Below, piece after piece: positions 3,790-63,260 of a stretch of 64,000 nt of DNA. The DNA is taken from the NCBI RefSeq assembly GCF_006345805.1, contig NC_043001.1:30256001-30320000 (forward strand). Direction: 5' to 3'. A program made the translations under genes and the position numbers. The DNA comes from Octopus sinensis. Taxonomy: Eukaryota. Under the pieces are notes generated by a model, which was not told where the DNA came from, ran no database searches, and saw only the letters and a program-made list of their open reading frames with translations. Each line of letters starts with the position of its first letter. Within the stretch, counting starts at the first letter, position 1.

Positions 3790-4255
3790 AAAACCTGTTG
3801 GGGCAAGTGAAATCGAAATCGAAATCAGAATCAAAATTGAACCAATCCTATGACTGGCACCCGGCAGTTGCCAGGACCCCTGGACTGGTGGTACGTAAAA
3901 AGCACTATCCAAATCGTGGCCGATGCCAGCGCCGCCTCGACTGGCTTCCGTGCCGGTGGCACGTAAAAAGCACCATCCGAATCGTGGCCGATGCCAGTGC
4001 TGCCTCGACTGGCTTCCATGCCGGTGGCACATAAAATGCACCAATCCGACCGTGGCCATTGCCAGCCTCGCCTGTAAAAAGCACCCACTACACTCACGGA
4101 GTGGTTGGCATTAGGAAGGGCATCCAGCTGTAGAAACACTGCCAGATAAGACTGGAGCCTGATGCAGCCTTCTGGCTTCCCAGATCCCCGGTCGAACCGT
4201 GCAACCCATGCTAGCATGGAGAACGTACGTTAAACGATGATGATGATGATGATGA
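3790..4255 (+). mobile_element. SINE family B (internal ~60-bp tandem units, (GAT)n tail)
   Basis: GTGCCGGTGGCACGTAAAAAGCAC units, TTAGGAAGGGCATCCAGCTGTAG body, GATGATGAT tail. About 15 related copies in the window. Confidence 0.85.
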
Positions 4256-4256
4256 T

Positions 4257-4550
4257 GATCCGTCTTCCATGCTGGCATGGGTTGGACAGTTGGGCTGAAA
4301 ACTGGTAAACTGGGGAGCTACACCAGGTTCCAATCTCATTTGGCATGGTTTCTGCATCTGAATGCCCTTCCTAATGCCAACCACTCCAAGAGTGTAGTGG
4401 ATGCTTCTTAAGTGCCACTTCTTACATGCCAGTTATGAAACACTAGCATTAGCCATGTCTATGATCTCACTTGGCTTGACAAGTCTTCTCAAGCACGGAA
4501 TTTTGCCAAAGGTCTCAGTCACTTGTCACTGCTTCTGTGAGTCCAAAGTT
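4257..4550 (-). mobile_element. SINE family B / RTE-type 3' end, tail-to-tail with the previous copy
   Basis: Reverse of the CCAACCCATGCCAGCATGGAA tail and the CTTGAGAAGAC RTE-like segment. Confidence 0.7.
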
Positions 4551-7974: not shown

Positions 7975-8300
7975 TCATCATCATCATTTAACGTCTGTTT
8001 TCAATGCTAGCATGGGTTGGACGGTTTGACCAGGCTCTGGGAAGCCAAGAGGCTGCACCAGGCTCCAGTCTGATCTGGCAGTGTTTCTACAGATGGATAC
8101 CCTTCCTAATACCAACCACTCCGTGAATGTAGTGGGTGCTTTTTACGTGCCACCAGCACAGAAGCCAGTCAAGGCGGCGTTGCCATCAGCCACGTTCAGA
8201 TGGTGCTTTTTATGTGCCACCGGCACAGATATCACAACAACAATTTCCATTTGATTTTTATTTTGATATTGATGAACTTGACTCAATAGGTCTCCTCAAG
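7975..8300 (-). mobile_element. SINE family B
   Basis: (CAT)n start and reverse body motifs. Preceded by a family A head at 7774-7950. Confidence 0.8.
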
Positions 8301-8779: not shown

Positions 8780-9345
8780 ATTATTATTATTCTATGTTTG
8801 ACTTTTGCTTTACACTTGTACAAGTTGGCTCCAAGTCTCACCCAGAGACCTCAAGAGACAAGTTGGAAGTTCATGTTGGTGTTACGCCTAGGGTGCCATA
8901 TGTTTGGTTTTGTACTTAGTGTTGTGCTAGTGAATGTCTAAGAAACCATAGGAAAATTATGTTTGTTTTAAAACTTGAGATTACATAGAAAGTATTTTGC
9001 GTAGGATATGAGCAGTTCCCATGATCACTATCTTTTGAATTTCTGCTATTTTGGGGTTTCCTGGTATCTGAGCTAGATAGCAATCAGCCCCTTTTGCTAT
9101 CATTCTCAGGGTATCTATGACAACAGGTATTGTTTTAGTTTTCAGGTTCCACATTTTGCTGATTTCTACTTCAAGATCTTTATATTTGCTCAGTTTTTGG
9201 TAGATCTTGACAGATACGTTTATATCGATTGGGACAGTCATATCAATGAGGAGGCATGATTTTTGTCCAAAGTCTTTCAATATGGTGTCTGACCTATTTG
9301 CATCTATCTTTATCTCAACAAAAAGCAATGCAGTTAATCAAAGTA
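8780..9345 (-). mobile_element. R4/Dong-type non-LTR retrotransposon 3' fragment (restriction-like endonuclease domain, (AAT)n tail)
   Basis: ORF 8981-9328, NRSDTIL...LIDMTVPIDIN...KYKDLEVEISKMW...IPVVI, matches the RLE PD-(D/E)xK C-terminus. TAA-repeat tail at about 8780-8792. Confidence 0.75.
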
Positions 9346-17159: not shown

Positions 17160-17607
17160 TATAAAAGGGCACCATTCAAGTGGGATCGTTACCAGCGTCA
17201 CTTTACTGGCACTTGTGCCCGTGCTAGTAGGGTTCCAAGAGCACCATCTGAGCATGATCGTTGCCAGAGCAACCAACTAGCTCCGTGCCAGTGGCATGTA
17301 AAAGGGCACCATTCAAGCGTGATCATTACCAACGTCACCTTACTGGCACCTGTGCCGGTGGCATGTGTAAAAAGATTCGAGCGAGGTCATTGCCAGTACT
17401 GCCTGACTGGCCCCGTGCTGGTGGCACATAAAATGCACCCACTACACTTTCAGAGTGGTTGGCATTAAGAAGGGCATCCAGCTGTAGAAACCCTGCCAGA
17501 TCAAGACTGGAGCCTGGTGCGGCCGTCTGGTTCGCCAGCCCTCAGTCAAAATCGTCCAACCCATGCTAGCATGGAAAGCGGACGTTAAACGATGATGATG
17601 ATGATGA
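17160..17607 (+). mobile_element. SINE family B
   Basis: Body motifs and (GAT)n tail. Confidence 0.85.
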
Positions 17608-18509: not shown

Positions 18510-19110
18510 CATCATCTTCATCATCATCGTTTAATGTCTGCTTTCCATGCTAGCATGGGTTGGTCAATTTGACTGAGGTCTGGTGAACCAGATGGCTACA
18601 CCAGGCTCCAATCTGATCTGGCAGAGTTTATACAGCTGGATGCCCTTCCTAACGCCAACCACTCCGAGAGTGTAGTGGGTGCTTTTACGTGCCACCTGCA
18701 TGAGGGCCAGTCAGGCGGTACTTGCAACAGCCTCACTCAAATGGTGCTTTTTATGTGCCACCTGCACAGGAGCCAGTCCAGCAGCACTGGCAACGACCTC
18801 GCTTGAATGTTTTTTCATGTGCCACCACCACAAGTGCCAGTAAGGCGACGCTGGTAACCATCACGCTCAAATGGTGCTTTTTACATGCCCACCAGCATGG
18901 AAGCCAGACAGCTGTTCTGGCAATGATCCTGCTCAGATGGAGCTGTTAACGCTCCACTGTCACAAATGCCAGTCATTGAATTTGGTTCAATTTCGATTTC
19001 ACTTGCCCGAACAGGTCTTCACAAGCAGAGTTTAGTGTCCAATGAAGGGAGGTTGGCATGGGTGCCAAGCAGAGTTTAGTGTCCCATGAAGGGAGGTTGG
19101 CATGGGTGCC
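18510..19110 (-). mobile_element. SINE family B with a local 40-bp tandem duplication at its end
   Basis: (CAT)n start and reverse body. AAGCAGAGTTTAGTGTCC..TGAAGGGAGGTTGGCATGGGTGCC occurs twice. Confidence 0.8.
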
Positions 19111-19544
19111 ATGATATATCTTTTTAAAATGTGTGTAATGGTAATATGAAACTTATAGAATAAACTACTTCAATAAATGATTTTGTTGTATCACAAGAGG
19201 GTTGTTATGCTAATAATATACATATGCCTTACTCTGTTTTATCTCTATAATTATCACTTGTCAATTGGTTAACATGTAACCAACTAACTAATCGATTGTT
19301 TGATTAATCTTTCAGTCAATTAATTAGCTAAATGATTAGTCAAACAGTTGATTACTTAATTGGTTAAATGTTAGCTAGTTGACTAATAATGATTAAAGAA
19401 ATGAATAGAATCAGTGTTTGTGTTTACTATTGGCATAATTATCCACCTGAGATATGAAAATATGTTTCAACACAAGAATTCATATCAAGAATCTTGAAAG
19501 CCATTTACAAAAACAAAATAATAAATTATTCATTTTTCAGAATC

Positions 19545-19602
19545 ATGAAGCAAATTGTTCTGTTTCTTGGAATTTTTCTCCAAATAAATTTAGCAACATC
19601 TT
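19545..19602 (+). CDS. first coding exon (signal peptide) of the giant repeat protein
   Basis: CATTTTTCAG|AATC ATG, then MKQIVLFLGIFLQINLATS plus T|GTAAGT. Basic n-region, hydrophobic h-region, small-residue c-region. The consensus phase-1 donor matches the acceptor at 22841. Confidence 0.8.
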
Positions 19603-21520: not shown

Positions 21521-22840
21521 ACTGACACATTATAAAACATTTTAGTTGCATTCAGTATTATCTGTAATGGAGTAAAATAAAAACTAGTACTCAATAGACC
21601 AGTGGTTCATAACCAGGTAGTCATGACCCCTGAGTGGGTCATTTGGGGTTTCTCGGGGGTGGGGGAGGGGTCACAGAGGATTTGGGAGAAAGCGATTCCT
21701 TAGACTAATGTAGATTTGTTATACTGCTCTCTCCTTCGTCCTTTCCCTCTCAACTGTGTCATTATTCTGCTATTCTTCATCCCTTTCCACACTGTCGGTC
21801 ATCTCCTACACTCTTCCTACATCCCCCAATTCATCCGTATGATTAATCACCCATACCCTTTATCCATCATTCACTACATCCACTAATCAACCCTACCCAA
21901 TCTACGCAGTCATCACCTGCTCTTCTTTACCTTCCCTCTAAATTTATTTATCATCCTTCAAGATTTGTTCACCTTTCATTATGTTCAAAAACACACACAC
22001 ACATACACACCTTATCTATCCCCTACCTCTAATCCATCTCTCACCCTCCCCATACACTCATGCAACAGTCTACCCACCAACACTCCTTGTTCTTCTATCT
22101 CCACTGATTTCTGCCTGAAACTTTTAAAGGCACACCTTGACTTCTCATCATAACTATTTTTATCTCACTCTAGCTCCAAATGGTCAGTCTCACTTTCTCT
22201 TCTATAATGCAAGTCCCCATGTAGCTAACTCTGCTAAACTAAGAAACCTGTTCTGTTCTGGCCCCCTCTCTCATAATTTAACCCTTATATACTACCATAA
22301 AGCTGCATCTTTCTCTACTGTAGTCCCACTCAGCTGAAGGGCATCTTGTTTTACAAGCTGCATAACAATCTCACTAATACTGAGGTCACAAAAAAAGTAC
22401 ACTCAATAAAGTGGCTGGCATGCATAAGCACATCCGGCTGTAGAAACCATGCCAAAGCAGACACTGGAGCATGATCATCATCATCATCCTCATCGCTTAA
22501 CGTCTGCTTTCTATGCTAGCATAGGTTGGACGATTTAACTGAGGACGAGTGAACCAGATGGCTACACCAGGCTCCAATCTTGATTTGGCAGAGTTTCTAC
22601 AGCTGGATGCCCTTCCTAATGCCAACCACAGTCTTCAAATCTGTTGGATCCTGACAAACCATTCAGCCTATGCCAGCATGGAATATGGACTTTAAAAGAT
22701 GATGAAGATGATATATGAGTGAGAGTGTGTATGTGTGCGTTTGTGAGTGTATAAATGTTTGCTTGTGTATACACACAAATAAACACACTCAAAAATGTTT
22801 CCTTTTTCATATTATTGATTAACATATATTTACTTTCCAG

Positions 22841-25800
22841 ATAAGTGGCCATCATACATTTCTGCAAATATGCCAGTTCTTTTGTCGAATACTGTTCAAG
22901 AGACAAACAAATACCCAAACGAGGCTTCTGGGAAATTAGTAACTAAATTAGTACCAACAACACAAATTCAACAACCAGAAAATATACAGCAATCTTCACT
23001 GTCACAAATGACATCCATTAATCCATTTAAACAAACAAAACCTATAAATCCTCTGATGGCAAAATTCTTGAGAACACGTGATGTATATGCACCAGAAAGA
23101 CAATACAGAGAGGTGAAGAGAATTGAAGTGATTCCAGAAGCTGAAAATAAAGTAATTTTACCATTATCACCAATATCAATGAAGAATAACATAGAAAGAA
23201 TATTTCCAAGTTTAAAAACAAAAAATTGGATAAAAACAGATAGGAAAATTGGACAAGTTGAAAAAAAGATTTTGAAAGAACTTTACAGAACATTGAGGAA
23301 GAAGCAAATGTCACTTAATAGAATGCCTGTGACAACGGAGAGAATGAAAACTGATAGTGAGAAACCATTGGATCTAGCAATAAAAGAAGTAGTAGAAAGC
23401 ATGTTGAAGAAAAATGTTATGCAAGAAAAAATGTTAGGATTGAAACCAAGAATAACAAAAGAAATGATAGAAAATTATTCACAAGAAAAAGAGCCAAAAA
23501 ATTCAAACAGGGAAATATTTGTGAAAGACACAATTCTAAAACTATTACCAAGTCTAATAAAGAATATCTCTTACAAAAGAATGCAAGAAATTGAAAGAAA
23601 AAATAGACATGAAGGAAGGCAGAGAAGGGATGCAAGAATATTGTTAACAGGAACAAAACAAGGGATATTTCAAGAGGCAGATCCTAGGTTATCAAGAATA
23701 GGACTAGAGAAGTCACCTAAACCAGTGGTAGGAGTTTTGCCAGGAATTGCAAAAGTTATGACACCTGGCCAAGAACAAAATGTCTTAACTAGAACAAATC
23801 ATAGAAACTCACCTGTCATAGTGTATCCTGCAAATGTACAAAGGATCTTGCCAAGAATGAATTACCAAAAGTTACCAGGATTATTACAAATATACCAGCC
23901 AAATATATTAGTAAGGAACAAGGAGAATGTAGTATCCAGACCATCCTATGCAATGTTCCCAGTAATGGCTCCAAATGTATTAGCTGCATCAGTACCAGCT
24001 GTTATTCAAAGAACACCAGACAATGCAGGAACTCATGGACTTTTACAAGATGTAAGGCAAGATATGTATAATGAAAACATTAATAGAATGCCAAAAATGT
24101 TACAAAATGGTGTAACAGGAATGATACAAAATGAGGCGCCAGTAATGGTACAAAGCTTGGTACCAGAGAAGGTTCATGTTGTAATGCCAGGAACACTTCA
24201 AAGTAATGCGGCAGGAATGCTGCAAAACGGTATGCCAGGAATGCTACAAAATGGTATGTCAGGAACACTGCAAAACAGTATGCCAATGATGCTACAAAAT
24301 AGTAGGCCAGGAAAGCTGCAACATGGTATGCCAGTAATGCTGCAAAATGGTAGGCCAGGAATTGCACAAAATGGTATGCCAGGAATGCTACAAAATGGTA
24401 TGTCAGGAACACTGCAAAACAGTATGCCAATGATACTACAAAATAGTATGCCAGGAAAGCTGCAACATGGTATGCCAGTAATGCTGCAAAATGGTAGGCC
24501 AGGAATTGCACAAAATGGTATGCCAGGAATGCTACAAAATGGTATGCCAGGAACACTGCAAAATAGTATGCCAATGATGCTACAAAATAGTATACCAGGA
24601 AAGCTGCAAAATGGTATGCCAGTAATGCTGCAAAATGGTAGGCCAGGAATTGCACAAAATGGTATGCCAGGAATGCTACAAAATGGTATGTCAGGAACAC
24701 TGCAAAACAGTATGCCAATGATACTACAAAATAGTATGCCAGGAAAGCTGCAACATGGTATGCCAGTAATGCTGCAAAATGGTAGGCCAGGAATTGCACA
24801 AAATGGTATGCCAGGAATGCTACAAAATGGTATGCCAGGAACACTGCAAAATAGTATGCCAATGATGCTACAAAATAGTATACCAGGAAAGCTGCAAAAT
24901 GGTATGCCAGTAATGCTGCAAAATGGTAAGCCAGGAATTGCACAAAATGGTATGCCAGGAATGCTGCAAAATGGTATGCCAGGAATGCTGCAAAATGGTA
25001 GGCCAGGAATTGCACAAAATGGTATGCCAGTAATGCTGCAAAATGGTAGGCCAGGAATTGCACAAAATGGTATGCCAGGAATGGCACAAAATGGTATGCC
25101 AATAATGCTGCAAAATGGTATGCCAGGAATGGCACAAAATGGTATGCCAGGAATGCTGCAAAATGGTATGCCAGTAATGCTGCAAAATAGTATGCCAGGA
25201 ATGCTGCAAAATGGTAGGCCAGGAATTGTACAAGGTGTAATGCAAAAATCTCAAGAAATCATATCACCAGGAATGGTGCAAGTTATGATACCTGGAAGTA
25301 TGCAAAATGTGATACCTGAAATAAGAGCAAGAAAAATGCAACATGTAATAAGCGGAGAAGATAAAAAAATGATATCAAAAACTGTTCAAGATACAGCAAA
25401 TACATATGCCAATTCAAGGCAACAAAATGATGAAAAAATGTTAAAAAATGACAACAAACAAGAAATATTTAAAAAGAATTCTATAAATAATTTGACAAAT
25501 GAGGAGAAAAAACAGTCAATAGAAAATTGGCAAATATCAAGAACATTACATGCACCATATCTAGAATTGAATAAAAACCCACATAATATGTATGGGAATA
25601 TATTTGAAACAAAGGAATTTAAAATTCAAGGAATCCCAGTTAGGCCATCATCAGGAAGCTTGCAACAAATGTTACCACAAATTTCCCATAGACTGCAAGT
25701 GCTATCTGGATCTGTGCAACAACCACCATTAACTATTCAAAAGATGAGGGTTCAATTAGAACCATATAAATCTGAAAGGAATCAATATATGTTACCGGGA

Positions 25801-28800
25801 ACTGTAGAAAGAATGGTTGAAGGAACAGTGCAAAAGATGTTACCTAGGGTTGTTGGAGAAATTTTAACAGGAAATGCACAAAGGATATTGCCAGAGAAAG
25901 GGCAATTGATGTTACATGGAACAGGACAAGAGATACTCACTGCAAAAGGACAAAGGATACAACATGGAACTGGACAGGGCATGTTACTTGGAACTGGGCA
26001 AAGGATTCTACCTGGATTTGGGCAAGGAATATTACCTGGAACTTGGCAACAGATGTTACCTGGAACTAAGCAACTGATGTTACCTGGAATTGGACAACAT
26101 AGGTTAAGTGTAACATGGCAAAGAATATTGCCTGGAACTGGGCAAAGGATGTTGCCTGGAACTGGACAAGGAGTGATACTTGGAACTGAGCAAGGGGTGT
26201 TACCTGGAACTGGACAAGGAGTGATACTTAGAACTGGGCAAGGGGTGTTACCCAGAACTGGACAAGGGGTGTTACCTGGAACTGGACAAGAAACGATACT
26301 TGGAACTGGGCAAGGAATGTTACATGGAACTGGACAAGGAGTGATACTTGGAACTAGGCAAGAAGTGTTACCTGGAACCGGACAAGAAACGATACTTAGA
26401 ACTGGGCAAGGAATGTTACATGGAACTGGACAAGGAGTGATACTTGGAACTGGGCAAGGGGTGTTACCTGGAACTGGACAAGGAGTGATACTTGGAACTG
26501 GGCAAGGAGTGTTACCTGGAACTGGACAAGGAGTGATACTTAGAACTGGGCAAGGAATGTTACATGGAACTGGACAAGGAGTGATACTTGGAACTGGGCA
26601 AGGGGTGTTACTTGGAACTGGACAAGGAGTGATACTTGGAGCTGGGCAAGGGGTGTTACCTGGAACTGGACAAGGAGTGATACTTAGAACTGGGCAAGGA
26701 ATGTTACATGGAACTGGACAAGGAGTGATACTTGGAACTGGGCAAGGGGTGTTACCTGGAACTGGACAAGGAGTGATACTTGGAACTGGGCAAGGGGTGT
26801 TACCTGAAACTAGACAAGGAATGATACTTAGAACTGGACAAGGGGTGTTACCTGGAACTGGACAAGAAACAATACTTGGAACTGGGCAAGAAATGTTACA
26901 TGGAGCTGGACAAGGAGTGATACTTGGAACTGAGCAAAGGATGATACCTGGAACTGGACAAAGTACAATACAAGGTACATTACTTGGAACTGGACAACAG
27001 ATGTTACCTAGAACTGTACAAATGATGTTGCCAACAACTAAGCAAGTTTTGTTACCTGCATTTCGACAAAGGATATTACTAGGAACTGGGCAAGGAATAT
27101 TAACTGGAAGTGAACAAGGGATGTCACATGGATCAGAAAAAGGTGTGTTACTAGGAACTGGACAGAGGATGTTACCAGCTACTATGCAAGGCATGCTACC
27201 TGGAACTGCAAAAGGTATTTTATCAAGAACTGGGCAAGTGATGTTACCAACTTCTAAACCAGGGATACTTTTCAGAACTGGGCAAGTGATGTTACCTGGA
27301 AGTGAGCAAGTGATGTTGCCATCTACTGAGCAAGAGTTGTTACTTGAAACTAGGCAAGGGATAATGCCTGGAATTAAGCAAGAGATATTACCTGGAACTG
27401 TAGAAAGAATATTATCAGAAACTCAACAAGGGATGTTACCAATAACTCACCAATGGATATCACCAACAAATGAACAGGGAATGTTATTTGGAATTGGTCA
27501 AGGAATGTTCCCTGGAAATGAGCAAGTGATTTTACCTGGAACTACTGAAGGAATATTATCAGACACTGAGCAAAGAATAGTACCTAACACTGGGCAAGGG
27601 ATATTACCTGCTGGGAAAGTGAAGTTACTTGCAATGAGGCAAGGCATGTTACCTGCAACTAGGCAAGAGATGTTACCTGGAATTAAGCAATGGATGTTGC
27701 CGGGAACTCAGCAAGGGATGATACATGCAGTTCCACAAAAAACATTACCTGTTATTGTGCAAGTAATATTACCTGGAACTGGACAACAGATGTTACAGGG
27801 AACTCAGCAAAAGATATTGCCTGTAACTGAGCAATGGATGTTACCTGTATTTAAGCAAGGGGTATTACCTGGAACAGGTCAAGGTATGTTACTTGGAACT
27901 GGGCAAGGGATACTACCTGGAACTGAACAGGCAATGCTACCAGGAAGAAGACAGGGTATCTTTGTACAGGGGAACTTACCAGAAAGTGCACAAAGGATCT
28001 TACCTAAAAATGAGCAAGTAATTTTACCTGCAACTGAACAAGGATCACTACCTGGAAATGTAATATGGATGTTACCTAGGAATTGGCTAGGGATGTTAAA
28101 TGCAACTGGGAAAGGAACTTCATCTGGAATTGTGCAAGAAGCATTACCAGGAATGAAACAAAAATTCCTTCTTGGATATAGGCAAGGTATGTTACCTGGA
28201 ACTGGACAAGAGACATTTGCAGGATATTTGCAAAAGGCCTTAGTTAAAAATGGACAAAATGTGTCACCTGTAACTGGACAACAGATATTACCAGAAAATG
28301 TACAAGAAAGGTTAAATGGTACCAGACATAGAATTTTACCAGTAGAGCAAATCATTTTGCCTGGAGGTATAAAGGAAATATTACCTGTAGCAAGGCAAGA
28401 GTATTTTCCTGAAACTGTGCCCAGTTTGTTACCTGTAGCTGAGCAAGGGGTAGTAGAAGGAAATGTGCAAACAATATTAACTAGCAATAGTCAAAGCTGG
28501 TTCCCAAATAATTTGCAAGGAAACATACCTAAAAATATGCAAGTTGTGGTACCTGGAAATGTACAAGGGACAATATTAGGAACAGTGAAAGAAATACCAC
28601 CTCCAGCTAAGCCAGTGATGATACCAGGAACTCTTAAAGAGATCTACCCTGGTAATTGCCATTGGACTGTACCTAAAATTGGACAAGGGGTGTTACCAGA
28701 AAATGGTCAATGGATCTTTCCTGGAAATAGACAAGTAGTGGTACCTGGAACTAGACAAGGGATGTTACTTAAAACTGGACAAGGGGTCTTACCACAAGTT

Positions 28801-30148
28801 GAGCATAGACTATTAAATGAAAATATGCAGAGGGATTTAACTGGAAATATTAATGGCATCTTACTTAGAAATAGGCAAAATGTGTTACTTATACCTGTGC
28901 AAGGGATTTTACCAAGAAATCATCAAGGGATTTCACCTGAAACTGGATATATGATTTCATCAGACAATGTTCAAAATAACTTCATTGGAACTAAGCAGAT
29001 GTATCCTGAATTTGTTCATAGCTTAGGTAACAATCAGCAAGAGAGTTTAGCTGTAATTGAGCATGAAGAGTTGCCTAGACCCCTCCAATGGACCCTAGCA
29101 GAAAATTGGCAAGGGATGTTACCTGGAGCTGTTAAAGGGACCTTTCCAGAAACTTTGCAACTGACCTTACCACAAAACAAACAGGGGATCTTACCTGGAA
29201 CTGGGAAAGAGATGTTAGCTGTGACTGGGCAGAGGGTGCTACCAGGCACTAATCAAAGGATCTTAGTTGGAATTAGAAAAGATATATCACTTGGAAGTGG
29301 GCAAAGGATGTTGCCAGCAAATAGGCAAAGTATCTTACTCCCAACTGTTCAAGGAGTGTCACCTGCAAACTGGTATGTGATTTTACCTGGGACTGGACAA
29401 TCAATGGTATCAGGGACTAGGGAAAGGATATTACCAGGAACAGGATATGGAATTTTACCAAAAAATGTGCAAAGGATCTCACTTAATCCTGGGAAGGTGA
29501 TCTTTACGGGAGGTAGGCAAAGTGTGTCGCCAGAAGCTATTCAAGGAGCTTTACTAGGAAACAGACAAATGATATTACCAAAAAATGGTCAAAGGGTGTT
29601 ATCTGGAATTGATCAAGGGATATTACTTGCAAATGGACAACAAAAGTTTGGTGGACATGGGCAACAAATTTCCTCAGGAAATATACAAGGGAATTTGCTG
29701 AGAACTGTACCAGTGATGTTACCTGGAACTGTTCAAAATGCAGAACAATATACAACATCACGAATGATGCCAGATATGAGAGGATTAGTAATAATTCCAA
29801 CGTTATCACAAGGAATAAATCCTAAAATGTGGCAAAGAACAGTGCCAAACAGGCTAAATTTGGGAATAGTACAAAACTCACTAAGTACCACGCAAACACT
29901 TTTACCTGAAATATCAGTAAGGAAAATGTATGGAACATTTACCCAAGCAAAGAATGGAATACCACTAAGAGCAAAACACACAAAACTACAAAACAAATTC
30001 AAATCAATACCAGTTAACCCCCAGACGGGTTTAATGACTTTTCTGGAAACTGGAAATAATAGACAGATTTGGAAACCATCTTCAAACCAACATCATGTAG
30101 CAGAGATTGAATTAAAACAGGAAGCAGCTGGCTCTAAACCACAAAAAC
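22841..30148 (+). CDS. 7308-bp symmetric (phase 1-1) exon encoding the bulk of a giant secreted octapeptide-repeat protein
   Basis: TTTACTTTCCAG|AT AAG TGG acceptor and AAA C|GTAAGT donor. 2436 codons without a stop in AT-rich DNA. The ORF track's C-terminal His/Thr run is intronic microsatellite read-through. Confidence 0.92.
24217..25224 (+). repeat. coding tandem array 1: 42 x 24-bp units (MLQNGMPG type) with 144-bp and 288-bp higher-order repeats
   Basis: Units counted from the translation. The order MSG/TLQNS/xLQNS/KLQH/MLQNGR/IAQNG recurs every 6 units. Confidence 0.95.
25789..29739 (+). repeat. coding tandem array 2: about 165 x 24-bp units (VLPGTGQG type), with a homogeneous core at ~26130-26960
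   Basis: GGAACTGGACAAGGA motif at 24-bp spacing. VIL/VLP alternation (16 aa), and R/MLH every 48 aa in the core. Confidence 0.95.
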
Positions 30149-30169
30149 GTAAGTTGAGTTTTCATACAT

Positions 30170-30270
30170 ATGTACATATACATACATACATACACAAGCA
30201 CACATGCATGCATGCAGACACACACATACACATACACACACACACACATACACACACGCACACACACACA
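30170..30270. repeat. (CA)n/(CATA)n microsatellite just inside the intron
   Basis: Directly visible. Confidence 0.9.
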
Positions 30271-30449
30271 TCAGGTGTATGCAGTTGATGTATCATACCC
30301 CATGTATTATACCCAGCAGTATCTGTTGCAGGGATGAATTTTCACACACCCGGTCTGATGTTTATTGTATTTTTAACACAGTATTTCCTGATGTGATGTT
30401 ATCTTGGAACAAATACTGCAGTAACTAGCCTATCAAGTGTACATACTTG

Positions 30450-30528: not shown

Positions 30529-31410
30529 CTCCCTCTCTCACACACACACACACCCTCTCTCTCTCTTTCTCGAGAAGAGGGGAGGGGGGATGGAGGAGGG
30601 GAGGGGAGGGAAGAAGGTAAGGAGGAAGAACAGTAGGAGGAAAAAGAAGAAGAGGAGAAAGGAAGAAGAAATAGAGGAGAAGGAAGAGGAGGAAAAAGAA
30701 AAGGAGGAAGAAAAGGGGGATGAAGAAGAGGAGTAGGAGGAAGGAGAAATAGAGGAGGAGGAAAAGAGGAGTAGGAGGAACAAGAAGAGAAAGAGGAGGA
30801 AGAAGAAAAAGAAGAAGAGGAGGAAGGAGAGAAGGGGATGAAGAAGAAGAGTAGGAAGAAGAATAAATAGAGAAGGAAAAGGAGGAAGAAGAAATAGAGG
30901 AGAGGGAGAGGAAGAAGAGAAGGAGGAAGAAGAGAAGGAGGTAGAAGAGGAGTAGGAGGAATAAGAAATAGAGGGTGGAAGAGGAGGAGGGGGAGGTGGA
31001 AGATAAGGAAGAGAATGAAGAAGAAAAAGAAGAAAAGAAGGAGGAAGTAGAGGGGAGGAGGAGTAGGAAGAAATGGAGGAGTATGAGGAAGAAGAGGAGG
31101 AAAAAGAAAGGGGAGGAGGAGAGGAGAAGAAGAGGCAGAGGAGGGGAAGAGGAGGGGATTGAGGAGGAGAGGTGAGGAGGAGGAAGCAGCAGAAGAGAAG
31201 GTGGAAGAGGAAGAGGAGGAGGAGTCGGGAAAAGAAGATGAAGAGGAGGAAGAGGAGGAGTCGGGGAAAGAAGATGAAGAGGAGGAGGAGGAAGGAGGAT
31301 AAGAAGAAGAAAAGGCAAAGCTGAGGAGGAGGAGAGGGGAGAAAGGAAGGAGGGTAGGAGAGGGAGGGCAGGAAGAAGAAGAATAGGAGGAGGAGGAGGA
31401 GGAGGAGGAT
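30450..31410. repeat. ~900-bp almost pure purine (GAG/GAA) low-complexity tract with CT/CA runs
   Basis: Directly visible. Explains the Leu/Ser/Pro/Phe and Glu/Lys ORFs. Confidence 0.95.
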
Positions 31411-34918: not shown

Positions 34919-36180
34919 ATAACTTGGCAGTACCAGTGAACGGTATATTTATGCAAAAGGTTCAAATGTCTTCAAACTACCAAAATAATTCTGAGAATCC
35001 AAAGAGTTTAAAACAATCATCAACCCAACAAAGGAGGGAGAACATCATTAAAAGATCTCTTTTTCACAATTATGCCTCCGCATCTGCACCTCTTAAAAAA
35101 CCAAAAGCTCTGAGAAACAACATACCTAATTTAATCAATTCAGTAATTCCAGCATTTAAGCAATCGAGTCATGAGCCAAAAGGAAGTTTAACACTTCCAT
35201 TTTCTGGTTATAAATCTCATGTACAGATGCTTGATAATGACTTTAGAACACTTTCAAAGAAAGACACATCTCATCTACAAACAATAACTAATTCAGAAAT
35301 GTCACACTCTCAAGACAGAAACAAAATACCAAATACAAATATTGGTATAAAGTCAAATGTATATGCAATGCCAAATAATGGATATACTATACCTTCCACT
35401 GAATACAAGTTTTACACACTAAGACAAAATGGTAAAAGTTATTCTAGATTACCAAACAAACTGCTACAATTGCTTCAACATAACCTTTTGTATCATTATG
35501 CTGGAAAAAATGTACCATTTGAAGGTTTTAGAAAGTTATCACCAATACTTTACAATCCCTCTGTGCCTTTTAGTATACAACAACCTAGACCTTACATACT
35601 TCAACAAATACCAGTAATGAATTTTGAAAGGCCAGTTACTAGAGATGGACCTTACATAGTAGAACCAGGACTACATTATCTTTATCAGCAGCCACCATCA
35701 GGATATGAAACTCGTATTTCAGGAACAGTATCAATTGGTGCAAACCAGATATATACGACCAAAAGAGGTAAAGTGTCGTATAACCCGTATAGAAACTACA
35801 ACCAAGATAAAACGTTATTGAGTAAACCTCCTGTTAAATATAATTCTACATTAAAGTCATTACTTAATCTTGAAAATAATTCGAAAATTTTGAATTCCCT
35901 TGGTTTAAAACATACTAACAAAATTGAACCAAAGACTACAAATGTCTACATATTAAAAACTATTCCTGAATCAAATAATATTACCAGAAGAAATATAAAA
36001 GCAATTAGCAAAGATGTTAAAATTGCACTTCCAAGAAATTCAGAGGGAATACATTTGGATTCCAATTCTACAAGTAAAAGAAGTATAAGAGGAATTTTTT
36101 CATTACGAAATGAACAAGCAAAAAAATTTTCTTTGCATAATTATCATGATTCTGGTTATGAAAATAATCACAATAGATAG
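34919..36180 (+). CDS. terminal exon (420 aa, Tyr/Pro/Asn/Lys/Ser-rich) of the giant protein
   Basis: TATTTCATTTTCCTTCAG|AT AAC TTG phase-1 acceptor, joining as C+AT=His. Open to TAG at 36178-36180. 58+7308+1262 = 8628 nt = 2875 aa plus stop. Confidence 0.8.
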
Positions 36181-37495: not shown

Positions 37496-38429
37496 AGCAA
37501 ATAAACACCAGGATACCAGGTTGCCAAGCAGTGGGAGTGCCAGGAGGAACAAATACAAAAACATGCATGTACATATATAAATTATGGACTTCCACACAGT
37601 TTCCATCTACCAAATTCACTCACAAGGCATTTGTCAGTTTGGGGCTACAATAGGACGGAACCTGAAACCATGTGGTTGCAAAACAAGCTTCTTAACCACA
37701 CAGCCATGCCTGCACCTGAGAAAGGTTATAATCAATTGAATCAACTAGTATCCATTAAGGGTATAAATACTGGAGAGATGATGAATCAAGTTAAATACAT
37801 TTGAATTCAAAAAGTAAAGAGGGCAAGAACTAAAATAGAAATTATGCAAAGAAACAATACGGTCAGATTTCTCAAAATATTAGTACCCACTGATGAGGTA
37901 ATTACAGGACCGAGAATGACAATGTGCCATACTACAGACTCATCTAAATAATGCCAGCAGAGGAAAATGGATGCTAAAATAACATTCATGGTGATAAGAG
38001 TAGTGGTTGTGATGATGTTGTTATTGGTGGTGGTGGTGGTACCTGAATCAAACCAGGACGAATCGAATCACCAGTCTGTGACTATATATAAATTGGGTAA
38101 AAACTATTTACTGATATACCACAGTGATGCATATCATCATCATCGTTTAACGTCCGCTTTCCATGCTGGCATGGGTTGGACGGTTCAACTGGGGTCTGGG
38201 AAGCCAGAAGGCTGCACCAGGCCCAGTCTGATCTGACAGTGTTTCTACAGCTGGATGCCCTTCCTAACGCCAACCACTCCGTGAGTGTAGTGGGTGCTTT
38301 TTATGTGCCACCAGCACAGGCATATGTAGGATTAAATTCTATAACGAATTAAAAGCAGGAATAGTGCTATTAACATTATCAACCAGACATACTCAATGTA
38401 TGTTTTGTTTGTTCGCTGGTTCATTGTGG

Positions 38430-41260: not shown

Positions 41261-41492
41261 ACTCATCTGTCTTGTCTTGCTAGTTATTTGAAAACCTCAC
41301 GAGTCCCGGTATCATGTACAAACACCAGTACACTCTGTAAAGTGGTTGGTGTTAGGAAGAGCATCCAGCTGTAGAAACCATGTCAAAGCAGACATTATAA
41401 CTTGGCATGGTTTGTACACTCAACTCCTGTCAAACCATCAAACCCATAGCAGCATGGAAAAAGAATGTTAAATGATTATATATATATATATA

Positions 41493-43450: not shown

Positions 43451-44032
43451 AGTAGATCATATATCTGAAAAATAAGTACACTCTAAATGGTTGCATGCCC
43501 ATGGCCATTTGAGTCTAATAAGCTGTATATAAAGCTAAGTAATTTATGGATGCAAAACCATTGGTCACTCTTCGATATAATTAACTTCTTAATATATATA
43601 TATATATATCATCATCATCGTTTAACATCTGTTTTCCGTGCTAGCATGAGTTGGACGGTTCGACCGGTGTTTCTACAGCTGGATGCCCTTCCTAACGCCA
43701 ACCACTCCGTGAGTGTAGTGGGTGCTTTTTACATGCCACCGGCACGGAAGCCAGTCAAGGCAGTGCTGGCATTGACCACATTTGGATGGTGCTTTTTACG
43801 TGCCACAGGTATCACAACTACAATTTCCATTTGATTTTTTGATGTTGATGTACTTGAGTCAATAGGTCTCCTCAAGCACAGCAGGTTGCCCTACGATCCA
43901 AGGTAAGTATAGCAGGCCGTTCTGCGATCCAAGGCACTTTGGATGGGCTGGAGCTTCTATGTGAAGCTGGTGCAGGAAACAGCCTTGAACTCACGTTATT
44001 TGTCGGGTCTTCGCAGTCACAGCATATATATG

Positions 44033-44739: not shown

Positions 44740-46200
44740 ATAATACAGATGGAAGCTTGAGGGCTGAACACAGACAATGCCCACCGATTGTTACTTCCTG
44801 ATAACATTGTTCTTTTTTTGAAAAACCACAAACGAGGTAATGAACCTCTTTAACAGTTACAAATTGAAGCGCTGAGCCTCTTACCAATCAAATCTCACAA
44901 AAGTTTAGCAAACATATACAATCATTTTTTTCAACTTGAGGCACTAAGCCTCTTACCAAACTCACCAAATTCAAATTGAGGCACAAAAACCTCTTACTCT
45001 ACTTCCCCGACTAAGTCTCTTACTGCCTGCAGTCACAAGGTGAGGCCCCATAAGAGACAATTGTATTCATCCTTAGTAAAGGAATCTATCACCCTGTAGA
45101 AATAATTTTCTGCCATGACCTCTGTAGTCATCTGTGGAGGCCAGTCCGGGCTTTCAATGCAGGTCAGGACCGCCTGTTTCCGACCTTCCAGATTCCTCAC
45201 AAAGTTCTCTATGGCCCCTCCCTTAAGAAAGAAGATCACAAATTCCTCATTTATTATACTGGGAGGGGCTACAGTTTCCTCCATCAATGGCACAATTCCC
45301 ACCAAGGTTTCAGGACATGCCAGCAGTGTACTGCTAACCGCTGGCACTGTCCCATTCTTTTTCTTCTTTTTTCTCATCTTTGATATGGGAGGGGGTGGTT
45401 CCTCTGCTTTAACCAGAGGATCATCCCTCAACTCCTGCAGCTTTAGGGTCCTTTGGTAAGCAACCATTGTTACCCACCTTCTTCCTTTTTTTCGGGGAGG
45501 TCTCTACCTTCTCAACTACCTCCATCTCTCCTTCCAGAAGAGGTGGGGGAGCTCTTCCACTGCCAACTGTTCCAGGACCCTACTCTGGTACTGGGGACAG
45601 TTCTTTTTAATGTGGCCTGGTTCCAGGCACAGGTGACACTTGGGGAGGGGGCGTCCCTCAAGTATAACTGGATACCTGCAACCGGCCATTTTCAAAAAAT
45701 CTGGAAAGACCAGATTCTTGGCTGATTGGGTCCACAGGGTCAAAACAGCTTTTGACCCAACCCAATCAGCCGCTGGCAAAATTTTAACATTAAGCAGCTT
45801 GGATCCGCTGCCACCCAGACCCCAGAAGATAGTATCCGCTATCCACTCGGGTTCTATCCAGGGTGGCAACCCACAGACCCAAGCTCTTGTCAACTTCTTC
45901 CCACAATACGTGAGAAGAAACAAAATCTCTTCGCCCTCTAAGGGCTGGCTCGCAAATTTGCAAGCCTCCTCAGGGGTGTCAAATAGCAACCACACCACTG
46001 CATACTTGACCCCAATGGAGATGAATTTAATAGTTGGCAAATACTTTGCCAACACTTTTTCAATTTTTGTTTTTTTAAAGAGAGCGATGGTGTCCAGCAA
46101 CTTTGAGTAAGTCCTTAACACCACCGTCCTCTCTTCAAAGTCTTTCATCCACTGTTTGGGTGGGACAACCTCCCACTCCAACGTAGAGTTGTTTATCTTT
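44740..46200 (-). mobile_element. frameshifted gag-like ORF1 (CCHC zinc knuckle) of a non-LTR element, with no ORF2 visible
   Basis: CHLCLEPGHIKKNC knuckle after an RRM-like region (45516-46181). Continues across at least two frameshifts through SPKKRKKV into 45033-45467. Confidence 0.7.
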
Positions 46201-46739: not shown

Positions 46740-47168
46740 AATCAAAATCGAAATCGATCAACAACAATGGAAATTGTAGCTGTGATACCAGTGCTGGTGG
46801 TACGTAAGAGAACCATCTGAACATGGCCGTTGCCAGCGCCGCCCTGACTGGCCTCCATTCCTGTGGCACATAAAAAGCACCATCCGATCATGGCCATTGC
46901 CAGCCCCGCCTGGCCCCTGTGCCGGTGGCACGTAAAAAGCACCAACCGATCGTGGCCGTTTGCCAGCATCATTTGGCACCTGTGCCAGTGGCACATAAAA
47001 AGCACCCACTACACTCACGGAGTGGTTGGTGTTAGGAAGGGCATTCAGCTGTAGAAACACTGCCAGATCAGACTGGAACCTGGTACAGCCTTCTGGCTTC
47101 CCAGACCCCAATTGAACCATCCAACCCATGGTAGCATGGAAAGCGGACGCTAAACAATGATGATGATG

Positions 47169-47839: not shown

Positions 47840-48420
47840 TCATCAACATCAAAATAAAAATTGTATGGATATTGTAGTTGTGATACCCGTGCCGGTAGCA
47901 CGTAGGGCCTCACAGAGGAAATGACGAAGACCAAGACCCCTGAGATATGCTGTGACTGTGAAGACCCGACAAATGGCTCGCAGGACAGCCTGCTGTGCTA
48001 ACCTTGGACCGTAGAGTGACCCGCTGTTCTCAAGGAGACCTATTGAGTCGAGTACGTCAACACCAACATCAAAATAAAAATCAAATGGAAATTGTAGTTA
48101 AGACACCTGTGCCGGTAACACATAAAAAGCACTGCCCAAACATGGCAGATGCCAGCGCTGCTTGACTGGCGTCCGTGTCGGTGACACGTAAAAGCACCAA
48201 CCGATCGTGGCCATTTGCCAGCCTCCTCTGGCACCTTGCCGGTGGCACGTAAAAAACATCCACTACACTCACGGAGTGGTTGGCATTAGGAAGGGCATCC
48301 AGCTGTAGAAACAATGCCAAACCAGACTGGAGCCTGGTGCAGCCTCCATGGCTTACCAGACCCCGGTTGAACCATCCGACCCATACTAGCATGGAAAACG
48401 GATGTTAAATGATGATGATG
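47840..48420 (+). mobile_element. RTE 3' fragment plus SINE family B
   Basis: CCTCACAGAGGAAATGACGAAGACC RTE tail motif, family B body and (GAT)n tail. Confidence 0.75.
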
Positions 48421-62904: not shown

Positions 62905-63260
62905 TCATCATCATCATTTAACATCAGTTTTCCATGCTGGCATGGGTTGGACGGATTGACTGGGGACAGGCAAGCCAGGAGGTTGCACCAGGCTCCAATC
63001 AAATCTGGCAAGGTTTCTACAGCTGGATGCCCTTCTTAACGCCAACCACTCCGTGAGTGTAGTGGATGCTTTTTATGTGCCACTGGCATCAGCTATGCTT
63101 GGATGGTGCTTTTTATGTGCTACCGGCACAGGAGCCAGTCGGGGAGGAGTGGCTGGCATTGACCATGTTCAGATGGTGCTTTTTACATGCCACCAGCATG
63201 GGGAGCCAGTGAGGCAGCACTGGCATCAACCCACACATGAATGGTGCTTATTGTGTGCCA
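62905..63260 (-). mobile_element. SINE family B
   Basis: (CAT)n start and reverse body motifs. Confidence 0.8.

Follow-up and report, generated by a model that had tools for sequence, protein, structure and literature searches.

We analyzed a 64,000-nucleotide stretch of Octopus sinensis DNA (assembly GCF_006345805.1, contig NC_043001.1, positions 30,256,001 to 30,320,000 of the forward strand), hereafter called the window, in which a sequence-only reading had singled out two blocks of octapeptide repeats. These repeats lie in a single plus-strand open reading frame (ORF) of 2472 codons at 22870-30288, and the span noted earlier, 24217-29739, corresponds precisely to codons 450-2290 of that ORF. 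The likely exon within the region is 22841-30148, which we refer to as the giant exon. It is preceded by the acceptor ttactttccag/AT at 22840/22841 and followed by the donor AAAAAC/gtaagt at 30148/30149, just 5' of an (AC)n tract. We rejected the stretch 30149-30288 as protein: its 140 nucleotides (nt) lie beyond the GTAAGT donor, and the "HTHTHT" C terminus that they would supply is translated (AC)n microsatellite. The features of the locus are listed in Table 1. Overall, we interpret the locus as the giant exon of a lineage-restricted gene whose nested periodicities were born of duplication and whose product would be a secreted, self-associating polymer, and we assign this interpretation as a whole a probability of about 0.7.

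Table 1. Features of the window; residues (aa) are numbered along the ORF, and positions are those of the window
Feature	Position	Strand	Description
Giant coding exon	22841-30148	+	7308 nt, phase 1-1; contains the whole repeat array
N-terminal region, aa 1-272	22870-23685	+	Non-repetitive, charged, K/E/R/L/I-rich; no 8-aa periodicity
Block 1, aa 450-793	24217-25248	+	43 octamers of MPGMLQNG type (= MLQNGMPG)
Block 1 higher-order repeat	24265-24984	+	Five 144-bp (6-octamer) copies, 288-bp A/B alternation
Spacer between blocks, aa 794-961	25249-25752	+	Non-repetitive; 168 aa
Block 2 head, aa 962-1097	25753-26160	+	17 diverged octamers, period 8 alone
Block 2 core, aa 1098-1365	26161-26964	+	About 33 octamers; 48-bp dimer TGQGVILG / TGQGVLPG or TGQGMLHG; weak 144-bp level
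Block 2 tail, aa 1366-2290	26965-29739	+	About 110 diverged octamers, T-x-Q-x-[IMV]-L-P-G; five in-register runs
Register break 1	26959-26970	+	Truncated 4-residue unit TGQS, near aa 1365; net -4 aa
Register break 2	27607-27633	+	7-residue unit, near aa 1582; -1 aa
Register break 3	27946-27984	+	Near aa 1699; -3 aa
Register break 4	28321-28365	+	7-residue unit, near aa 1826; -1 aa
Register breaks 5 and 6	28990-29031	+	Two 7-residue units, aa 2041-2054; near aa 2044 and 2052; -1 aa each
C-terminal part of giant exon	29740-30148	+	Non-repetitive
Putative signal-peptide mini-exon	19541-19602	+	Predicted; coding sequence from ATG 19545: MKQIVLFLGIFLQINLATS + 1 nt
Probable last coding exon	34919-36180	+	Predicted; 419 codons, N/S/Y/K/P-rich; stop TAG 36178-36180
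SINE-like copies	4101-4130, 4355-4384, 8090-8119, 17455-17484, 18633-18662, 22600-22629	Both overall	
SINE-like copies	38248-38277, 41342-41371, 43676-43705, 47022-47051, 48276-48305, 63020-63049	Both overall	

The 8-residue beat that the sequence-only reading had described was borne out in all repeat segments. About 210 eight-residue repeats are present across the giant exon. The protein autocorrelation peaked solely at multiples of 8, with a lag-8 identity of 0.381 compared with 0.084 ± 0.006 in shuffled sequences (z = 47), and Fourier power at period 8 reached z = 16-66 in every repeat segment; for the N-terminal region, used as a control, z was 0.6. Degenerate octamer-like units (e.g., ANVQRILPR and VGVLPGIAKVMTPGQEQN) were also seen at 23686-24216 (aa 273-449) and at 25249-25340. 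Such units thus precede block 1 and also follow directly on it; therefore, the array was once longer than the two blocks.

Above the octamer, block 1 behaved largely as proposed. It contains 43 octamers, where 42 had been claimed, and is composed of 18% G, 17% M, 13% Q, 11% N, 11% P, and 10% L, with no aromatic residues. The claimed six-unit period and A/B alternation were both recovered: Tandem Repeats Finder (TRF) reported a 144-bp period with 7 copies and 93% matches, and the five 48-aa copies at aa 466-705 were 95-100% identical in DNA. Within the 96-aa alternation, the copies at aa 514 and 610 were 100% identical and those at aa 562 and 658 were 97.9% identical. Nucleotide identity by unit lag in this higher-order part was 0.78-0.79, except at lag 6 (0.96) and lag 12 (0.97). 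The same measure gave no 16-aa level, leaving 8, 48, and 96 as the levels present there; a faint 16-aa signal in block 1 (Fourier z = 3.8) stemmed from its last 11 units (aa 706-793). Across the five copies, 136 of 144 nt columns were invariant. The proportions of synonymous (pS) and nonsynonymous (pN) differences between copies were 0.036 and 0.027, respectively (pN/pS 0.76), and a synonymous AAC/AAT difference tracked the A/B alternation. A 144-bp period that merely reflects a recent crossover had been named in advance as the outcome that would overturn the structural argument, and with copies this similar, synonymous sites included, that outcome is the one we obtained.

In the core of block 2, TRF detected periods of 48 and 144. 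The alternation of VIL with VLP/MLH octamers was confirmed, with nucleotide identities of 0.88 at even unit lags and 0.80 at odd ones. The 48-aa level was weak (0.90 at lag 6 versus 0.88). MLH, which had been placed every 48 aa, occurs at aa 1150, 1182, 1230, 1278, and 1342; two of the spacings are indeed 48, and the others are 32 and 64. The core showed a pN/pS of 0.76, and its Gly codon was GGA after the Pro/His unit in 16 out of 16 cases and GGG after the Leu unit in 12 out of 14 cases (Fisher p = 1e-6).

The diverged tail of block 2 retained a 24-bp period with 63% matches and nothing above it. Odd and even unit lags both gave an identity of 0.566 (p = 0.87), indicating that the 16-residue level is absent from the tail, and lags 6 and 12 gave 0.576 versus 0.564 (p = 0.28), indicating that the 48-residue level is absent as well. 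No Fourier peak was found at 16 or 48 in this segment, where z for period 16 was between -1.0 and 1.5. Periodicity at the length of a 16-residue coil, which a beta-solenoid should preserve in its diverged repeats, was therefore not found in the tail. The proposal of an 8/16/48 hierarchy in both blocks thus stands in part: the level of 8 is present everywhere and those of 16 and 48 locally, whereas block 1 has 8/48/96 and the tail 8 alone.

Taken together, these results show that the 16-, 48-, and 96-residue levels are duplication history and not a structural requirement. Selection at the protein level is blind to the silent tags that track the periods; therefore, the higher levels are inherited DNA blocks that arose through unequal crossing-over. 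Since they are missing from the old tail, nothing maintains them. Arrays of this kind are known as higher-order repeats (HORs) of the alpha-satellite type, with spidroin "ensemble repeats," mucin variable number tandem repeats, and involucrin as coding examples. As in HORs, the blocks in the octopus array are far more alike than neighboring monomers (0.96-0.97 versus 0.78 in block 1 and 0.88-0.90 versus 0.80 nt identity in the block 2 core). Silent differences run along the block structure (the GGA/GGG and AAC/AAT tags), and the divergence between copies is near neutral, with the pN/pS of 0.76 given above. The likeness extends to the monomers, which are about 78% identical and build multi-monomer blocks of 95-100% identity with synonymous markers that follow the blocks, and to the homogenized young cores flanked by decayed old units. 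It differs from the familiar cases in that the monomer is merely 24 bp, the array is under frame selection, and the protein family is undescribed. As a lineage-specific repetitive structural gene with HORs, this is a known kind of gene, whose protein family itself has not been described. The sequence-only reading had taken the hierarchy as a sign that selection keeps the register, and such a register as a reason to expect a solenoid. Given near-identical DNA copies, synonymous tags, and the loss of the higher levels in the tail, that argument does not hold.

Octamer register had been reported to hold for about 165 units. Wrap-around profile alignment divided block 2 into 166 units, and 159 of them (96%) are exactly 8 aa long. 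The register is nevertheless broken six times, by -1 to -4 aa and never by a multiple of 8, and the uninterrupted register expected of a beta-solenoid was therefore not observed across the array. The in-register runs of block 2 comprise about 50, 27, 14, 15, 26, and 29 units, the longest being about 50 octamers. Blocks 1 and 2 share one absolute phase because the spacer between them is 168 residues long, a multiple of 8, and all gaps placed by MAFFT between array segments are multiples of 8. New units arise whole by slippage or crossover, and the mutation mechanism itself therefore preserves the register. It follows that indels in multiples of 24 nt cannot tell structural selection from mutation bias.

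By contrast with the higher levels, the open frame is clearly under selection. The frame of the giant exon has 0 stops in 2426 codons, compared with 40-196 in each of the remaining five; within the diverged tail, those five still contain 20-95 stops each. In a simulation in which the consensus unit was mutated without constraint to the observed 30% divergence, 33.5 ± 5.6 in-frame stops arose, compared with 0 observed. The plus-strand frame also stays open across about 1000 non-repeat codons and the 925-codon diverged tail. Minus-strand ORFs remain open for 350-470 codons, but they are confined to the young repeat cores, and we rejected them as real genes.

Within the tail, the Q, hydrophobic, L, P, and G positions of the octamer are much better retained than the others. 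Among 110 units, Q was kept in 83, I/M/V in 82, L in 77, and P in 65, and the three Gly columns were kept in 27 (column 1), 39, and 50. A chi-square calculated by hand from the counts of the three Gly columns was about 10.5 (2 degrees of freedom). Retention of the columns is unequal, and the motif x-x-Q-x-hydrophobic-L-P-G is therefore unevenly constrained. Between-unit identity in the tail at codon positions 1, 2, and 3 was 0.59, 0.55, and 0.55, respectively, which we read as common descent plus codon bias. We did not accept the corresponding pN/pS of about 0.9 as proof of neutrality, because this comparison of paralogous units is confounded by sub-family history, saturation, and a strong bias toward A/T-ending codons. 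Separately, some columns of the tail (26965-29739) are more conserved at the third codon position than at the second, with identities of 0.69/0.36/0.78 for A-x-T and 0.59/0.36/0.71 for G-x-A; this may stem from the history of sub-families, from codon bias, or from constraint on the nucleotides themselves in the 7.3-kb exon.

Tandem duplication of whole units, through replication slippage or unequal crossing-over, has amplified a 24-bp unit encoding the general octapeptide x-x-Q-x-hydrophobic-[L/M]-P-G about 210-fold, with the variants MLQNGMPG in block 1 and TGQGVLPG in block 2. Block 1 was re-amplified recently, as a 144-bp block of six units and then as a 288-bp block, and the core of block 2 as a 48-bp dimer and, weakly, as a 144-bp block. 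These recent amplifications account for the 16/48/96-residue levels, which fade out entirely in the older tail. The register is kept mainly through the birth of whole units and has been shifted by six rare small deletions. The targets of selection are the open frame, a low-charge composition of Gly, Gln, and Pro with aliphatic residues and Met, and the motif positions Q3, hydrophobic 5, L6, P7, and G8. The product is predicted to be secreted, given an upstream exon for a putative signal peptide and a last exon rich in Tyr, Asn, and Lys, and its repeat domain would most likely be a self-associating material polymer, in which short hydrophobic "stickers" recur every 8 residues and are separated by turn-forming P-G and N-G/G-x-G spacers. 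The expected outcome is a beta-turn-rich, largely non-globular chain that could form a gel, coacervate, or fiber matrix; one rigid, selected solenoid of 100 coils would not be expected.

The composition of the repeats is consistent with such a polymer, although taken by itself it is ambiguous. The fraction of charged residues is 0.04-0.13, the hydropathy falls on the compact side of the charge-hydropathy boundary, and the contents of P+G and Q+N are 22-31% and 13-24%, respectively. Judging by these values, the repeat chain should self-associate, either in a liquid or gel state or by building ordered beta structure. Known structural proteins rich in Pro-Gly or Gln include the silk protein MaSp2, flagelliform silk (GPGXX), high-molecular-weight glutenin (PGQGQQ), elastin, and amelogenin-type matrix proteins rich in Q, P, L, and M. 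The octopus product resembles these in being encoded by one giant exon, probably secreted, nearly free of Cys, and very low in charge, and in combining P-G turns with Gln and aliphatic residues or Met in short periodic units. It shares no homology with them, its P+G content lies below that of elastin or flagelliform silk, and, unlike silk-type proteins, it has no recognizable poly-Ala or cross-linking domains. A numerical threshold of P+G was reportedly given by Rauscher et al. in 2006. The P+G principle for such proteins is described in PMC5703643.

The main competing explanation is that the octamers pair as the 16-residue coils of a long two-sheet beta-solenoid or cross-beta fiber and that selection on this fold keeps the register. 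The AlphaFold check suggested with the original claim favored it to a degree. From a single sequence, AlphaFold2 (AF2) modeled block 1 (aa 450-705) as all-beta with a strict 16-residue strand period, at a predicted local distance difference test (pLDDT) score of 67.9 and a predicted template modeling (pTM) score of 0.53. The block 2 core (aa 1098-1289), modeled from an alignment of ten self-windows that do not overlap, again showed a 16-residue period (pLDDT 68.2, pTM 0.61). The Foldseek neighbors of the models were all beta-helices, beta-rolls, or solenoids, leucine-rich repeats included. Low charge on the compact side of the boundary, the 96% of block 2 units that are exactly 8 aa, and turn-formers P-G and N-G at fixed recurring positions would also suit a solenoid. 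However, model confidence is just about 68, and the block 1 model had no significant Foldseek match (E >= 0.1, template modeling [TM] scores of 0.2-0.3). According to Pratt et al. (2025; PMC11795689), AF2 turns 41% of random perfect repeats into beta-solenoids that are predicted with confidence yet unrealistic, and the same bias probably reaches some natural repeats too. At pLDDT values below 70, we regard the solenoid models as weak evidence. The diverged tail, where constraint at the level of the coil should show best, has no 16-residue signal; the 16-residue alternation of the core is tagged at a synonymous site; the six register shifts (-1 to -4 aa) would disrupt the fold; and units resemble one another at third codon positions no less than at the first two. 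We consider a selected solenoid or cross-beta fiber possible but unlikely. If the repeats do adopt such a structure, about 105 coils at about 4.8 Å each would form a rod of about 50 nm, segmented by the six register shifts, with a Met-rich first block that might be sensitive to oxidation.

A comparison with bacterial ice-nucleation proteins (INPs), which have an 8/16/48-residue periodicity, had accompanied the solenoid proposal. The background invoked there is sound: the INP repeat has the consensus AGYGSTQTAGEESSLT, and each 16-residue repeat is modeled as one coil of a solenoid (PMC9418140). The octopus repeats resemble INPs such as InaZ and PbINP in forming a long periodic array that is low in charge and Gly-rich, and in that AF2 models both domains as two-sheet beta-solenoids with 16 residues per coil. 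They differ in that the TxT, SLT, and Tyr-ladder motifs of AGYGSTQTAGEESSLT are all missing from the octamers TGQG[VM]LPG and MLQNGMPG, in that the gene has introns and lies at an animal locus, and in that the higher periods are young, block-specific, and absent from the diverged part. The Pfam Ice_nucleation repeat had no match in the whole ORF, and no Pfam or PDB match was found in the flanks, where INPs have an N-terminal membrane-anchoring domain and a C-terminal capping domain. Based on the motifs, the Pfam result, the flanks, and the intron-containing animal locus, we ruled out membership in the INP family. That the repeats form a new class of secreted cephalopod fiber, solenoid or cross-beta, independent of the bacterial ice-nucleation and antifreeze solenoids, strikes us as quite unlikely.

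Several points weigh against the duplication-born, secreted polymer that we favor. AF2 gave both blocks regular beta-solenoids with 16-residue coils, not random coils, and the block 2 model had its best TM scores (0.53-0.55) to a calcium-dependent antifreeze beta-helix, 3p4g. The P+G content is below that of classical elastomers. Just six small indels in 166 units, about 1300 diverged residues, are few, and this scarcity could reflect some selection on unit length. The confounding of pN/pS between paralogous tail units affects our interpretation as well. Near-identical 144-bp copies are easily misassembled, and the copy numbers may therefore be wrong. Finally, selection on the register, the exon joins, secretion, and expression are judged from the sequence of a single genome.

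The case for secretion depends on the gene model. Scanning for an ATG, a hydrophobic stretch, and a phase-1 donor identified a candidate signal-peptide mini-exon of 62 nt located 3.2 kb upstream of the giant exon, in the context tttttcag/aatcATG...CATCTT/gtaagt. Its end phase is the one that fits the giant exon, so that the two would join in frame. A putative last exon, spotted as a 418-aa ORF within AT-rich DNA, lies 4.8 kb downstream; its acceptor (ttccttcag/AT, phase 1) is compatible with the donor of the giant exon. When joined, the three putative exons read through cleanly for 2875 residues with one Cys, and the model thus predicts that the product is secreted, has about 2875 aa, and is nearly devoid of Cys.

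Alternatively, the protein could be intracellular, starting at ATG 22870 with no signal peptide, in which case its low-charge Q/G/M/P repeats would act as a condensate-forming low-complexity domain and the Met-rich block 1 would possibly be redox-sensitive. The exon contains no ATG before the one at 22870, which carries an A at -3, the N-terminal 272 aa are K/E/R-rich, as in many cytoplasmic or nuclear proteins, and the signal-peptide exon is one of six candidates from a heuristic scan. However, the frame is already open from the acceptor at 22841 to this ATG, and the mini-exon has the textbook n-h-c layout of a signal peptide together with a consensus acceptor, a GTAAGT donor, and a fitting phase. 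Phase 1-1 exons and a single Cys in 2875 aa likewise fit secreted matrix proteins. We thus doubt an intracellular location, which has only a small chance of being correct. It is highly improbable that no functional protein is made, either because the frame is open simply as the unit lacks stops or because the array is a misassembled non-coding minisatellite: in the young cores, minus-strand frames likewise run for 350-470 codons without a stop, and neither homologue nor annotation was found, but the plus frame is open over about 1000 non-repeat codons and a 925-codon tail in which about 33 stops would be expected, and splice consensus sequences flank it on both sides.

Homology searches did not place the protein in any known family. 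Neither the N-terminal 420 aa nor the whole ORF returned a homologue in library searches, and the non-repeat parts had no match among 5.8 billion or 1.84 billion proteins, O. bimaculoides proteins included. An exhaustive HMMER search with aa 1-1200 produced 396 matches, all of them on the repeats and none on the non-repeat parts. We rejected these matches as orthologues, as the top ones that we inspected were unrelated octapeptide-repeat proteins. Exact-protein look-up returned no record for the ORF or for either of two versions of the last exon, and neither protein patterns nor a two-unit DNA pattern had a match in metagenome contigs. No part of the gene matched Pfam, the whole ORF giving just two sub-threshold, unrelated hits; a PDB sequence search gave compositional matches alone (the engineered XTEN polymer and a PAAR protein); and Rfam and tRNA scans were empty. 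Literature searches on the octamer sequences and on octopus repeat proteins turned up nothing relevant. Because the non-repeat parts have no homologue in libraries that include O. bimaculoides proteins, the gene is either unannotated, perhaps through repeat masking, or very fast-evolving.

The best library matches (P0001, P0003, P0012, P0026, P0028, and P0033) were to proteins with the 8-residue-period motifs DKDGKPLV, EGPLQNST, SPERSKNG, SPGAEQNG, LQSTSQAT, and IIDGTGED. Octapeptide coding repeats are common; SPGAEQNG and block 1 have xPGxxQNG in common, which may or may not reflect homology. Like the octopus array, the DKDGKPLV, EGPLQNST, and SPGAEQNG arrays and the mammalian prion octarepeat, mentioned here by name only, are 8-residue coding repeats with P, G, and Q. 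The library proteins differ in that they match by periodicity and composition and have charged or polar motifs, whereas the octopus motifs are hydrophobic.

As the locus illustrates, the nested periods of a repeat protein can record past duplications and nothing else. The test applied here is cheap and general: to measure DNA identity per unit lag, to compare synonymous tags with the periods, and to check whether the old units of the array show the higher periods. The apparent unannotated gene, of about 2875 codons, is predicted to encode a secreted, nearly Cys-free, uncharged polymer of Gly, Gln, Pro, Leu, and Met. Among cephalopod repeat proteins, suckerins and reflectins have been productive biomaterials, and a regular 8-residue sticker-spacer design would be a reasonable candidate material, whichever structure it adopts.

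The window as a whole has the character of animal DNA, with a GC content of about 37%, frequent microsatellites, and remnants of retroelements. A repeat resembling a short interspersed nuclear element (SINE), with the core CAGCTGGATGCCCTTCCTAATGCCAACCAC, is present in 12 copies on both strands, where chance alone would give none; the acceptor of the giant exon has one of them 210 bp upstream. A minus-strand retroelement fragment at 8981-9328 is 79-87% identical to many O. bimaculoides UniRef proteins, its closest relatives, which points to an octopus or a close relative as the source. The same fragment has a 76% match to UPI00321971E2, which is labeled Escherichia coli and looks like cephalopod DNA contaminating a bacterial assembly. 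Two adjacent minus-strand ORFs of the long interspersed nuclear element (LINE) type, of 221 and 144 aa, occupy 45033-46181, the larger ending in a CCHC zinc knuckle. In the intron 3' of the giant exon, a purine-only tract of about 800 bp (30590-31410; GAA/AGG/GGA) shows strong strand asymmetry and might adopt a triplex (H-)DNA structure.

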